DNA of 64,000 nt from Sminthopsis crassicaudata (lineage: Eukaryota). Of the stretch, positions 8,983 through 11,900 are shown piece by piece (the stretch's first letter is position 1; the number at the start of each line of letters is the position of its first letter). A program made the translations under genes and the position numbers. Location of the stretch: NCBI RefSeq assembly GCF_048593235.1, contig NC_133620.1, forward strand, positions 373,393,261 to 373,457,260, written 5' to 3'. The notes beneath the pieces were generated by a model that made no database searches, was not told the DNA's origin, and saw only the letters and a program-made list of their open reading frames with translations.

Positions 8983-11900
8983 CTGGGAAGTCGAGGAAAT
9001 GTAGTGAGGGGGGGGAGCCGGCTCCGCCCCCCTCAGGTGCCCCGGTCCTCACTCACCGGGAGCTGCCGGCCGCATCCGGCTTAGAGAAGAGCTTCCTGAA
9101 CCTGGCCTTGCCCAGGAGACTCTTGAGCTGCTTCTCAACCCCGCTCCGCTTCTCCTGGCTCAGCTTCCGGGCAGAAGCCAGCCACAGGCGGGGGCGCTCG
9201 TCGTCGCTGGAGTCCCTGGGAGATCTCAGAATGTCGGGATCTTCCCAGAGAAGGGATTCCCGGCCGGCCCCCTCTGTGTCCTCCCCCTGGAGCCCCCTGC
9301 CCTCTAGCACTCACAGCTCCAGATCCAGGTCCCCCTCGGGAGTCAGGGGCGCTGCGCACACGGAGCAGGTGTTGGCCAGGAGCCGGAAGCAGGACCTGCA
9401 GAAGAGGCCTGGGGGGGAAGCCCAGGGAGTCAGGTCTGGGGAGCGTTGGCCTGACCTCCCATCCCTTTTTCTCTCCTCCCACAAATTTCCTGGAGCGCTT
9501 CCTGGCCCCCCCCCCCAACCTCACTGGGCCACAAATGTTGAAATATCATGCAATAATAGAACTATATGTAAATTGCAGAAAAGGCGCCATGCAAATTAGG
9601 CCAAAAATCACAAATTTGTGTCTGCTTTATGCAAATCACAAAATTCATATGCAAGTCTCCATGCCCATATGCAAACGAATCCATGCATAGCAATAACATG
9701 GGATCCAAATGTAAAACCAATGTAAAGCTTATGTAAATTATGGATCACAATTGATTGTGTCTATGCAAATGATATCAAATTATAGATTTAAAATTGGAAA
9801 GGACCTTAGATGCCAGTCTGTCCACTTCCATTTTACAGAGAAAGGAAACTGAGGTATAGGGAAGCAAAATGATTCCCTGGGTTTCTGAGTGACAGAAATG
9901 GGACTGGAACCTAACCTTTCAGCTGCCAAATCCAGAGCTCTTCCCATGGTACCATGCAAGACTCCAGTGATTCCTGGCAGACCCACCTTTGCAACCTGGG
10001 GTGCTGCAGGACACAAAGTCTTCCATGTCCCGTTCATTGTGAGGCCTCCCACAGCCCAGACAGTAGGTTTCGTGTATTCCCAGCCGACGGATCAGCGATG
10101 CTAGGCAGGGGCACCTGCAGGAGGGTTTGGGGTGTTACAGCTGCTCGATGGAGCAACCCTCCTCCAACCCATAAGGGGAATCCATCCTTTTTTCTCAGTA
10201 TTTTTCTCCCTTTGATGACCCTTAGGAAGGCCTGCCTACAGTTTTACCCCCACTGAGCCAGCTGTTCTTTCTCTGGTCCCATTCCCCCTTTCTATCCTGC
10301 TACAGAATCCTTCATCAGAGTATCCTAGAAATCCTGAGGTTCCCCTCACTTTGCATCTTCAATTTAGAAACAAATTTTCACTCTGACCCTGGATCATCTA
10401 CAGGTGAACTTTCCCTGCAGGGAATGGGGGGGGGGGAACCTACTTGGCAGCCAGTATGAGGAGGATGCTGGTGTGCCCCTGGTCAGCTGCCCGGCGCCTC
10501 ACTGCCCCCAGCAGAGAAGTGGACAAGTTGGATCGGCGGGTCAACAGTTTGTTGTACAAGAAAGAGATCCGTTCCTGGATGGGGTTTAGTGGGAGTGCTT
10601 AATCTTTTGGGGTCCAACAGTAGACAGATTTTTACCCAAATTAAAAGGGAAAGGTTTCCCTGGCCTCCAGTTAGGCAAAGGCACTTGGGAGGGAGGGGAC
10701 AGAAAGAGAATAACCAACCCCTAATAAGCTGTAAACCTGATTATGTGGAAGGCCCCACCAAGGCATTCCCAATCAGGAACACTATGCACTCCCTGAGACA
10801 CTTCTGTCCTTGTTTGTCCTGGAGGGGCTCTACCAAAACCTGGGCTCTCAGAAATGAAGTTTCCCAAACTTCCCATCACTTCCACCACTAACCAACTGTT
10901 GTTTGGGATAAGATGGCTCCCCTCCCTTCACCCACCCACTGGAACCCCAGCCCCTTCACCTGCTCCCGGAAGGGGTAGTAATAAGCACAGATGATCCGAC
11001 TCGTCCGTCCAACATAAGTGCCAAAGAGGGTAACAAAGAAACACAGCCCGTACATGAGGCCTGTGGACAGGGCGGGTGTCACTGAGGAGGAATGCAGGCC
11101 CGTACCGGGCAGGCCGCCCTGCACCCTCCACTGTGCGGTCCTGATGAGGCAGGCTGGAACCCCCTAGTCTGATGTTGTAACTCCCCAAACAGGTTCCATT
11201 TTCTGGAACTTCCCTTCCTTCCATCCACTTCATATTCTTGATAGTCATTATTAGAAGAACTAACATTTATTTTCTTTTTTTAGATCAGACTTGAGATTTC
11301 ATAGGTATTAGGAATTCTGAATGAGGGAATTTCCTCCATCAAAGCAGATAAAACCCCACTCAGAAACTTATAATCTCAGAGTTAAGAGGTTTAATGACTT
11401 GAGCATGCATCTGAGTCAGAACTTGAACTCAGGCCTTCCTGACTCTGGGCCTGATACTTTATCCTCTGTGCCACCTAGCTGCCCTGGTACCCCATATAAT
11501 GCTCTCTCATTATAAAGCATTTCATCTTCATTATCTCATTTCATCCTTACAACAGTTGTGAAGTAGGGAGGACAGGTGGTGTCATTACTAAGATTAAGTG
11601 ATTTGCCCATGATCACACATTATATGTCAGAACCAGGATTTAAATCCAAGTCTTTCTAACTTTTAAGGCCAGGCCAGTGCCCCCTGATTAGAACATATGG
11701 CCTCTCAAATCACTATCAACGTTGCCTAAAATTGGCGTGTTTTTTCTCACTTCAATATCCCTAACATCATTGACTTGTACTTGAACTTGCATTCCACTAA
11801 AACCTTTCTTTTACATGAAATTAAATCTATTCATGTCTCCACTAACCTGTCCTTGTGCAATTGACTTTTTGAACACAAGTGAAGTACTTTACATTTGCCC

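Follow-up and report, generated by a model that had tools for sequence, protein, structure and literature searches.

A dense, conserved row of octamer-like sites in a DCST2 intron beside ZBTB7B: a putative marsupial-lineage gene switch

Introduction

In an intron of DCST2 of the dunnart Sminthopsis crassicaudata, a short distance past the end of ZBTB7B (ThPOK), sites that match or resemble the octamer ATGCAAAT stand close together on one strand. The question raised by this locus is whether the row of sites is a regulatory module maintained by selection, and if so, how it arose, which factors may read it and which gene it may serve. A sequence-only reading had proposed a homotypic POU enhancer acting on ZBTB7B, possibly built from an old minisatellite of about 20 bp and with site spacings close to helical phasing. 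Here, a 64-kb stretch of dunnart DNA (the window) was analyzed together with the orthologous loci, 22 kb each, of Antechinus, Sarcophilus and Dromiciops, so that four marsupials were compared, and with one eutherian locus, that of the hedgehog.

Results

Genomic setting

The array lies where it had been said to lie, just downstream of ZBTB7B and within a DCST2 intron (Table 1). The first coding exon of ZBTB7B is identical at 373/373 positions to NCBI Sminthopsis crassicaudata ZBTB7B, and the likely poly(A) region of this gene is near 8711-8745, which places the array approximately 0.8 kb past the 3' end of the gene. The DCST2 exons on either side of the intron are both Cys-rich, and the exons further upstream give a colinear match to the Pfam DC_STAMP profile. 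The intron also houses a MIR-core SINE remnant, which was found beside the array in 4/4 marsupials. With up to three mismatches allowed, 13 occurrences of its core, TTTACAGA..GGAAACTGAGG, were counted in the window, versus 0 expected, and no array-like sequence adjoins the core in the 13 other MIR-core copies. The SINE may be a mere neighbor of the array.

Table 1. Features of the ZBTB7B-DCST2 region, in positions of the window
Feature	Position	Strand	Remarks
ZBTB7B last coding exon (zinc fingers)	6340..6822	+	CDS end; stop codon ends 6822
DCST2 exon	9318..9403	-	tblastn vs Dromiciops locus L003: 93% identity
DCST2 penultimate intron, 584 nt	9404..9987	-	Splice sites read; houses array and SINE
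Octamer array	9548..9770	+	11 same-strand sites; orthologous arrays in three other marsupials
Site ATGCAATA	9548..9555	+	Unchanged in 4/4 marsupials
Apparent ancient ~140-bp tandem duplication, copy 1	9549..9650	+	Colinear alignment with 9689-9785
Site ATGTAAAT	9566..9573	+	ATGTAAAT in three dasyurids; ATGCAAAT in Dromiciops
Perfect octamer ATGCAAAT	9589..9596	+	Unchanged in 4/4 species
Perfect octamer ATGCAAAT	9629..9636	+	Unchanged in 4/4 species
Site ATGCAAGT	9649..9656	+	ATGCAAAT in Antechinus, Sarcophilus, Dromiciops
Site ATGCAAAC	9669..9676	+	ATGCAAAC in dasyurids; ATGCAAAT in Dromiciops
Site ATGCATAG, with palindrome ATGCAT inside	9683..9690	+	ATGCACAG in Sarcophilus, ATGCATTG in Dromiciops
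Apparent ancient ~140-bp tandem duplication, copy 2	9689..9785	+	Colinear alignment with 9549-9650
Site ATGTAAAA	9709..9716	+	Same in Sminthopsis, Sarcophilus, Dromiciops; AAGTAAAA in Antechinus
Site ATGTAAAG	9720..9727	+	ATGCAAAG in other three species
Site ATGTAAAT	9731..9738	+	Unchanged in 4/4 species
Perfect octamer ATGCAAAT	9763..9770	+	Retained in Dromiciops; 8-bp deletion in Antechinus and Sarcophilus
Conserved flank between array and SINE	9771..9815	+	Near-invariant in four-species alignment
MIR-core SINE remnant	9826..9965	-	Orientation as DCST2; core TTTACAGA..GGAAACTGAGG
DCST2 exon	9988..10090	-	Conserved in Dromiciops

Composition and density of the array

The 223 bp of the dunnart array contain 11 ATGYA-type octamer or octamer-like sites, namely three perfect ATGCAAAT, two ATGTAAAT and six sites with one or two mismatches. 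All 11 words that had been reported were found exactly in place and on the plus strand; on the minus strand, the region has a single ATGYA, which belongs to the palindrome ATGCAT at 9683-9688. The density of the sites, which had been called striking, was confirmed as such by several counts. ATGYA occurs 100 times on the plus strand of the window, which corresponds to approximately 0.35 expected per 223 bp as against the 11 observed, and the runner-up among 223-bp windows on either strand has five sites. Mononucleotide shuffling of the region gave 11 ATGYA in 0/20,000 trials, and simulation under a first-order Markov model of the region itself gave 11 in 25/20,000. The array thus has the properties of a homotypic cluster of transcription factor binding sites (three or more sites for a single factor, packed into a few hundred bp at a density beyond background), and one composed of matches to ATGCAAAT or to documented functional variants. 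Of such variants, ATGtAAAT was bound by Oct1 and Oct2 in EMSA (PMC1800861), and ATGTAAAAC is a documented Oct-1/Oct-2 site (PMC2191694). The word at 9709 is identical to the octamer of the IL-2 promoter. The extended consensus of the array is approximately wTATGYAAAt, which agrees with the optimal Oct-1 site.

Conservation among marsupials

Orthologous arrays were located at L001:15183-15397, L002:14971-15185 and L003:15147-15367, and contain three perfect ATGCAAAT in Antechinus, three in Sarcophilus and six in Dromiciops. That the octamers should be conserved while the spacers diverge had been set as a check on the functional proposal, and within marsupials its outcome was positive. Invariant columns in the four-species alignment amounted to 80/88 in the motifs versus 102/135 in the spacers (Fisher p=0.004). 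Parsimony changes per site were fewest in the motifs (0.080), followed by DCST2 exons (0.203), the spacers (0.211) and other introns (0.295); the motif positions had 3.7 times fewer changes than introns (Poisson P = 1.4e-5) and 2.6 times fewer than their own spacers. Variability falls exactly over the eight motif positions, random 11x8 blocks within the array were as conserved as the motifs in only 1.7% of trials, and constraint is thus focused on the motif positions (p 1.4e-5 to 0.017 across the tests). As a control for composition, AT-rich intronic 8-mers had 0.267 changes per site, with 9.7% of them unchanged, whereas 5/11 motifs were unchanged.

The array as a whole is also well preserved over the longest distance compared. 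Its identity to Dromiciops was 0.865, the best of 382 non-exonic 223-bp windows in a 7-kb stretch, for which the median was 0.72 and the maximum 0.857, and indels are confined to one spot, compared with 58 gap openings per kb in other introns. Within Dasyuridae alone, the whole array (0.91) was no better conserved than neutral introns (median, 0.90), and the constraint signal therefore comes largely from one deep comparison together with the contrast of motifs and spacers. The sites thus exist, are non-random, and are more conserved than the surrounding spacers, exons and introns, with nearly indel-free spacing.

Individual sites differ in their fate. At 9649, the dunnart alone has weakened what was ancestrally a perfect octamer; in Antechinus and Dromiciops, ATGCAT precedes the octamer there and forms a MORE-like ATGCATATGCAAAT. 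The site at 9683 is the least conserved of the 11. The sole indel spot of the array is at 9763, where the deletion common to Antechinus and Sarcophilus leaves TTGCAAAT. Two sites, at 9649 and 9720, are weakened in the dunnart, and one was lost by deletion in the Antechinus-Sarcophilus clade, so not every site is needed. A Sox-Oct composite before 9763 was considered and rejected, as dunnart and Dromiciops do not have the same spacing there and the other two species lack the site.

Origin and spacing

Segments 9549-9650 and 9689-9785 align colinearly with a score of 23, compared with a mean of 11 and a maximum of 22 in 2000 shuffles. Even when the octamers are left out, ATCACAA..TTGTGTCT is common to the spacers 9597-9628 and 9739-9762, at a score of 12 (shuffles, no more than 11). 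This alignment indicates that the array arose by an ancient colinear tandem duplication of a unit of approximately 140 bp that carried several sites. The suggested origin from a minisatellite of about 20 bp was not supported by TRF, which found no 20-bp array, its one call being 2.7 units of 11 nt at 9708-9737; the two-copy duplication is preferred. The reported spacings, multiples of 20 bp and two steps of 11 bp, are genuinely present. Helical phasing was not statistically robust: the test gave p=0.35 at 10.5 bp, and the best period was 10.2 bp, with R=0.72 and p=0.01 as a single test but p=0.16 once the scan over periods was allowed for.

Copies elsewhere and the eutherian comparison

A second copy of the array was found neither in the window nor in the remainder of the 22-kb loci of the other three marsupials. 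The hedgehog locus (L004, 21.8 kb) contained no octamer cluster, no perfect octamer and at most one ATGYAA per 250 bp, and gave no blastn match to the array. The hedgehog is the sole eutherian compared, and its DCST2 3' exons barely align, so that the orthologous intron was not delimited; a therian-wide conserved element was not seen at this locus of one species. As far as these sequences go, the array has been found only in australidelphian marsupials and does not appear to be pan-mammalian. As the hedgehog has no such cluster, ChIP at the human orthologue, which had been proposed as a check, may have nothing to look at.

Discussion

The proposed regulatory module

Octamers that are steadier than their spacers within marsupials support a functional homotypic octamer module, and this part of the sequence-only reading stood; neither a 20-bp minisatellite nor helical phasing was supported. 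We regard the array as probably a real, if putative, marsupial-lineage gene switch. The more specific reading, that it is a constrained homotypic POU-site cis-regulatory module acting at the DNA level as a candidate enhancer, is the one we prefer, with belief and doubt evenly balanced. We infer POU factors as readers and transcriptional enhancement as output. Points against this reading are the neutral-level divergence of the whole array within Dasyuridae, the sites weakened or deleted in single lineages, the missing cluster in the hedgehog and the 5' or intron 1 position of the known mouse Thpok elements.

The array would have been built before the split of Dromiciops from the Australian marsupials, which we ourselves date to approximately 60 million years ago, by tandem duplication of a unit of approximately 140 bp that already carried several octamers, beside the MIR-core SINE. 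Purifying selection would since then have acted chiefly on the 8-bp words themselves. Several POU proteins may load onto the sites as one face-independent row, the candidates being ubiquitous Oct-1, Oct-2 together with OCA-B in lymphocytes, or, in some other tissue, a different POU class. The loaded proteins would jointly enhance transcription from a promoter in the vicinity. ZBTB7B, which ends 0.8 kb away, and the host gene DCST2 are equally possible targets. The narrowest version, a 3' enhancer of ZBTB7B (ThPOK) specific to the marsupial lineage, at least approximately 60 million years old, born by duplication beside a SINE and read by Oct-1, by Oct-2 with OCA-B or by another POU factor, is doubtful. 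No paper in the literature was found to tie ThPOK/Zbtb7b to octamer factors or to an enhancer in a DCST2 intron.

Alternative explanations

The array might also lack function altogether. It would then be what is left of a decayed tandem duplication, or a transposable-element tail, evolving slowly by chance, with octamers abundant only through the duplicated unit. The internal colinear duplication does account for part of the motif count, the SINE adjoins the array, and divergence at the dasyurid level is that of neutral sequence. Duplication, however, cannot account for motif change 3.7x below introns and 2.6x below the array's own spacers, nor does it explain the near lack of indels, and no second copy was found in the 64 kb or the three 22-kb loci. 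We regard this explanation as unlikely.

A conserved DNA element could also be read by other proteins, such as C/EBP or PAR-bZIP factors (TTATGTAA- and TTGCAAT-like words) or, as the DNA is AT-rich, homeodomain proteins, with the likeness to octamers partly coincidental. T replaces C at position 4 in 4/11 dunnart sites; CTTATGTAAAT (9728-9738) includes the PAR-bZIP-like TTATGTAA; ATGCAAT at 9548 is a C/EBP half-site; and some spacer blocks, such as 9552-9565 and 9771-9815, are invariant too. Against these observations, the ATG.AAA core is invariant in nearly all of the 44 site instances, and C at position 4 (32/44) with T at position 8 (25/44) gives the octamer itself. Moreover, at sites that differ between species, the alternative is usually the perfect octamer (sites 9566, 9649 and 9669), and the palindromic partners expected of bZIP sites are not conserved, which makes such readers quite unlikely.

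At the RNA level, the array might be an element of DCST2 pre-mRNA, an intronic regulator of the splicing of the two small Cys-rich exons, bound by proteins of the Rbfox (GCAUG) or AU-rich-element type. In the sense of DCST2, the array reads AUUUGCAU/AUUUACAU and a few GCAUG are also found, the host intron is short (584 nt) and conserved over its full length, and all sites share one strand. Nevertheless, only one (U)GCAUG (9682-9687) is kept in 4/4 species and the others are lost in at least one, which also disposes of an Rbfox-type GCAUG cluster, and the conserved word is the full octamer rather than a known splicing motif. Structure z-scores of -0.12 and +0.77 on the two strands gave no signal, and the Rfam search yielded no match near the gathering score. 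An RNA-level role is accordingly improbable. The same z-scores, with no fitting Rfam family, led us to reject an snRNA-type gene, a miRNA or a structured RNA, and the 8-bp indel and the motif-periodic conservation speak against coding potential.

Comparison with known systems

The array shares its 8-bp word and the tolerated variants of that word with the octamer elements of immunoglobulin promoters and enhancers, the ARRE octamer of the IL-2 promoter and the catfish IGH Emu3' enhancer. Those elements have one or two octamers together with sites for other factors, whereas the array packs 11 putative sites, all in one orientation, into 223 bp and is located 3' of the gene. Homotypic enhancer clusters of vertebrates and synthetic multimerized octamer enhancers also consist of many copies of one site and show redundancy. 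As in such clusters, species differ in which individual sites have come or gone, although the array as such endures; compared with them, it is unusually dense for a natural element, strictly uniform in orientation and still shows its duplication origin.

The AmnSINE1-derived enhancers of Fgf8 and Satb2 are conserved non-coding elements exapted from repeats (PMC3427154, PMC3234267). Like them, the array is a conserved non-coding block of restricted lineage that is physically linked to an old SINE and has been preserved since insertion; unlike them, its motifs are not part of the sequence common to the 13 other SINE-core copies, and its function is putative. At the Thpok/Zbtb7b locus of the mouse, the known cis elements comprise the distal regulatory element, with its silencer and thymic enhancer, and a proximal enhancer, all of them 5' or in intron 1 (PMC5360760). 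The array shares with these the locus and the candidate role of regulating the same gene, but it is not one of them: it is located within DCST2, 2.7 kb past the stop codon, and was not seen in the hedgehog, the single eutherian compared. To our knowledge, the mouse is the one species in which ThPOK regulation has been mapped, and the mapping there is confined to the gene's 5' end.

Implications

The array is compact (223 bp) and has a simple grammar of one word, one orientation and 11 copies, and is thereby a convenient natural system for testing how a homotypic cluster works and how redundant its sites are; the sites lost differ between marsupials, and natural variants are thus at hand. If the array is inert, it would be a cautionary case of conservation at the motif level without function. 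ZBTB7B also has roles in mammary gland, skin and fat. If the array does act on this gene, marsupials would have a POU-dependent input to a master regulator of CD4 T-cell fate that is missing in eutherians, and lineage-specific enhancers of master regulators are one route by which body plans and immune systems diverge.

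Octamer Array and Its Gene Context

All eleven octamer-like 8-mers described in the sequence-only reading of 9548-9770 were recovered at their coordinates on the plus strand by a sequence check. The perfect octamer ATGCAAAT has five copies in the 64-kb window, three of which lie inside the 223-bp array. The looser word ATGYA occurs 100 times on the plus strand and 79 times on the minus strand of the whole window; within the array it occurs 11 times and once, respectively, the sole minus-strand copy being the palindromic ATGCAT at 9683. Every other 223-bp stretch of the window, on either strand, holds at most five ATGYA. 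A count of 11 was reached in none of 20,000 mononucleotide shuffles of the array stretch, and in 25 of 20,000 trials of a first-order Markov model trained on that stretch itself. The octamer array is therefore real and non-random.

The array lies within DCST2, whose exons are colinear with the Pfam DC_STAMP profile and which is annotated at orthologous loci as Dcst2/DC_STAMP/zf-RING_DCST1_C. The downstream Cys-rich exon is followed by an intron of ~99 nt and then by the last DCST2 exon, and the array intron is therefore the penultimate one. Its remainder consists of a MIR-core SINE remnant, the core word of which occurs 13 times in the window versus 0 expected, and a C-rich polypyrimidine side.

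Features of DCST2 at the octamer array
Feature	Position	Strand	Remark
Array-bearing DCST2 intron	9404-9987 (584 nt)	-	flanked by two Cys-rich exons
DCST2 Cys-rich exon, upstream side of array intron	10090-9988	-	
DCST2 Cys-rich exon, downstream side of array intron	9403-9318	-	
MIR-core SINE remnant	~9826-9965	same orientation as DCST2 (-)	within array intron

The neighboring gene is ZBTB7B, whose first coding exon shows 373/373 identity with the NCBI protein of Sminthopsis crassicaudata, the fat-tailed dunnart from which the window comes, and whose coding sequence ends at 6822 (plus strand). An A/T-rich AATAAT run at ~8711-8725 marks the likely poly(A) region, and the proposed distance of 0.8 kb between the array and the ZBTB7B 3' end is therefore fair. 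ZBTB7B (plus) and DCST2 (minus) stand tail to tail, and a minus-strand ATTAAA occurs at ~8761-8766; their 3' ends are a few tens of bases apart (8711-8766) and may overlap. The expected ZBTB7B 3' UTR contains a segment of 78% G+C (7501-8000), an island-like composition in an unusual place, and at its end a 100-bp block (8600-8699) with 97% identity in four marsupials including Dromiciops, far above the neighboring exons; this block may have a conserved regulatory role in the UTR.

Constraint on the Octamer Motifs among Marsupials

Orthologous loci were obtained via the marsupial ZBTB7B protein cluster from Antechinus flavipes (L001), Sarcophilus harrisii (L002), and the South American Dromiciops gliroides (L003). 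The entire array intron was alignable and the array was present in all three, which carry three, three, and six perfect copies of ATGCAAAT, respectively, with none of the sites on the minus strand. Sites that vary among species mostly have the perfect octamer as their other state (9566, 9649, and 9669); ATGCAAGT at 9649 is a weakening specific to the dunnart. The perfect octamer at 9763, which the dunnart has and Dromiciops keeps, is ancestral, and an 8-bp deletion at this site is common to Antechinus and Sarcophilus.

The expectation that octamers are conserved while spacers diverge was borne out among the four marsupials: by parsimony on the four-species tree, motifs showed 0.080 changes per site, versus 0.211 in array spacers, 0.203 in DCST2 exons, and 0.295 in other DCST2 introns (Poisson P 1.4e-5 for motifs against the intron rate). 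Invariant alignment columns numbered 80/88 in motifs versus 102/135 in spacers (Fisher p=0.004), the drop in variability coincided exactly with the eight motif positions, and random sets of eleven 8-nt blocks within the array matched motif conservation in 1.7% of trials. Base composition does not account for the slow motif change, as intronic A/T sites and AT-rich intronic 8-mers showed 0.262 and 0.267 changes per site; 9.7% of such 8-mers were unchanged versus 5/11 motifs. Identity of the array to Dromiciops, 0.865, was the highest among 382 non-exonic 223-bp windows in 8760-15900 (median 0.72, maximum 0.857), and the array had one indel spot versus 58 gap openings per kb in other introns. 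Within Dasyuridae alone, the whole array is at neutral level (0.91 versus median 0.90), so that constraint is signaled by the deep comparison together with the contrast between motifs and spacers.

Several other observations were made in these alignments. A MORE-like palindromic POU dimer word, ATGCATATGCAAAT, occurs in Antechinus (L001:15278-15291) and Dromiciops (L003:15262-15275), orthologous to window 9643-9656, and is lost in the dunnart (ATTCATATGCAAGT) and devil (ATACAT..). Second in conservation among the non-exonic parts of the stretch is the block 11710-11970 (four-way invariance 0.75), which carries the densest minus-strand ATGYAA cluster of the window (5 in 223 bp); in L001-L003, too, no minus-strand cluster is denser than this one (4, 3, and 3). 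An AT-rich intronic block at 13010-13230 shows exon-like conservation (0.84-0.88 identity to Dromiciops). About 150 bp of 10700-10850, present in Sminthopsis, Antechinus, and Dromiciops, are absent in Sarcophilus (identity 0.01 over 10700-10799), reflecting a deletion specific to that lineage or else a gap in its assembly.

In the hedgehog locus (L004), no perfect octamer was found in 21.8 kb, ATGYAA reached at most one per 250 bp, and blastn found no match to the dunnart array intron. The cluster is absent from this locus of one eutherian; because the DCST2 3' exons there barely align with those of the dunnart, the statement is limited to that absence. The hedgehog exon at L004:13676-13816, the counterpart of dunnart 9403-9318, seems terminal and has lost conserved cysteines (RSC-----NPNSVGQAPSSPHSDLD), and no counterpart of the upstream Cys-rich exon could be located at L004; the hedgehog DCST2 C-terminus may be degenerating.

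Origin of the Array and Alternative Explanations

The suggested origin from a ~20-bp minisatellite was not upheld: TRF detected an 11-nt x 2.7 array at 9708-9737 and nothing else, and thus no regular 20-bp repeat. Instead, the array appears to have arisen long ago by tandem duplication of a ~140-bp unit already bearing several octamers, leaving two copies plus a middle section, because its earlier and later portions align colinearly (9549-9650 with 9689-9785; score 23 versus mean 11 and maximum 22 in 2000 shuffles) and spacers 9597-9628 and 9739-9762, with octamers removed, still share ATCACAA..TTGTGTCT. No second array copy was found within the 64-kb window, nor array-like sequence next to the core at 13 other MIR-core copies. 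Helical phasing lacked robustness, with R=0.32 (p=0.35) at 10.5 bp and, at the best-scoring period of 10.2 bp, p=0.01, which rose to p=0.16 after allowing for the scan over periods.

An Rbfox-type splicing element is disfavored, as the DCST2 sense strand has no more than one conserved GCAUG. A Sox-Oct composite beside the last octamer was unconserved in the four-species alignment. RNA structure was not indicated for either of the two strands (z -0.12 and +0.77), no Rfam family came near its threshold, and the 8-bp indel, together with the conservation pattern, rules out protein coding. Beside the array, a G run and a C run make up an inverted repeat at 9408-9517, with arms at 9410-9429 and 9498-9517, and the length of the C run varies among species; its weak minus-strand mir-328-like match (27.9 bits versus a gathering score of 70) is probably chance.

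Putative Function

The array sites share the extended consensus wTATGYAAAt, which fits the optimal Oct-1 site. Of the features of an octamer-dependent enhancer, the array shows the sequence and the constraint. In its most likely reading, which carries middling confidence, the array is a homotypic module of POU sites under constraint that would serve as an enhancer, and in its way of working this candidate would resemble previously described octamer elements and homotypic clusters of sites. In gel shifts, both Oct1 and Oct2 bound the T-variant ATGtAAAT (PMC1800861). Mouse Thpok elements known so far are all located 5' or in intron 1 (PMC5360760), and our literature search turned up no paper connecting Zbtb7b with octamer factors or with an enhancer in a DCST2 intron.

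Thus, the observation made in the sequence-only reading was confirmed and its interpretation supported in part. Judged from sequence comparison, the array constitutes a lineage-restricted conserved non-coding element made of one transcription-factor word, and its interest lies in being compact, simple in grammar, and directly testable.
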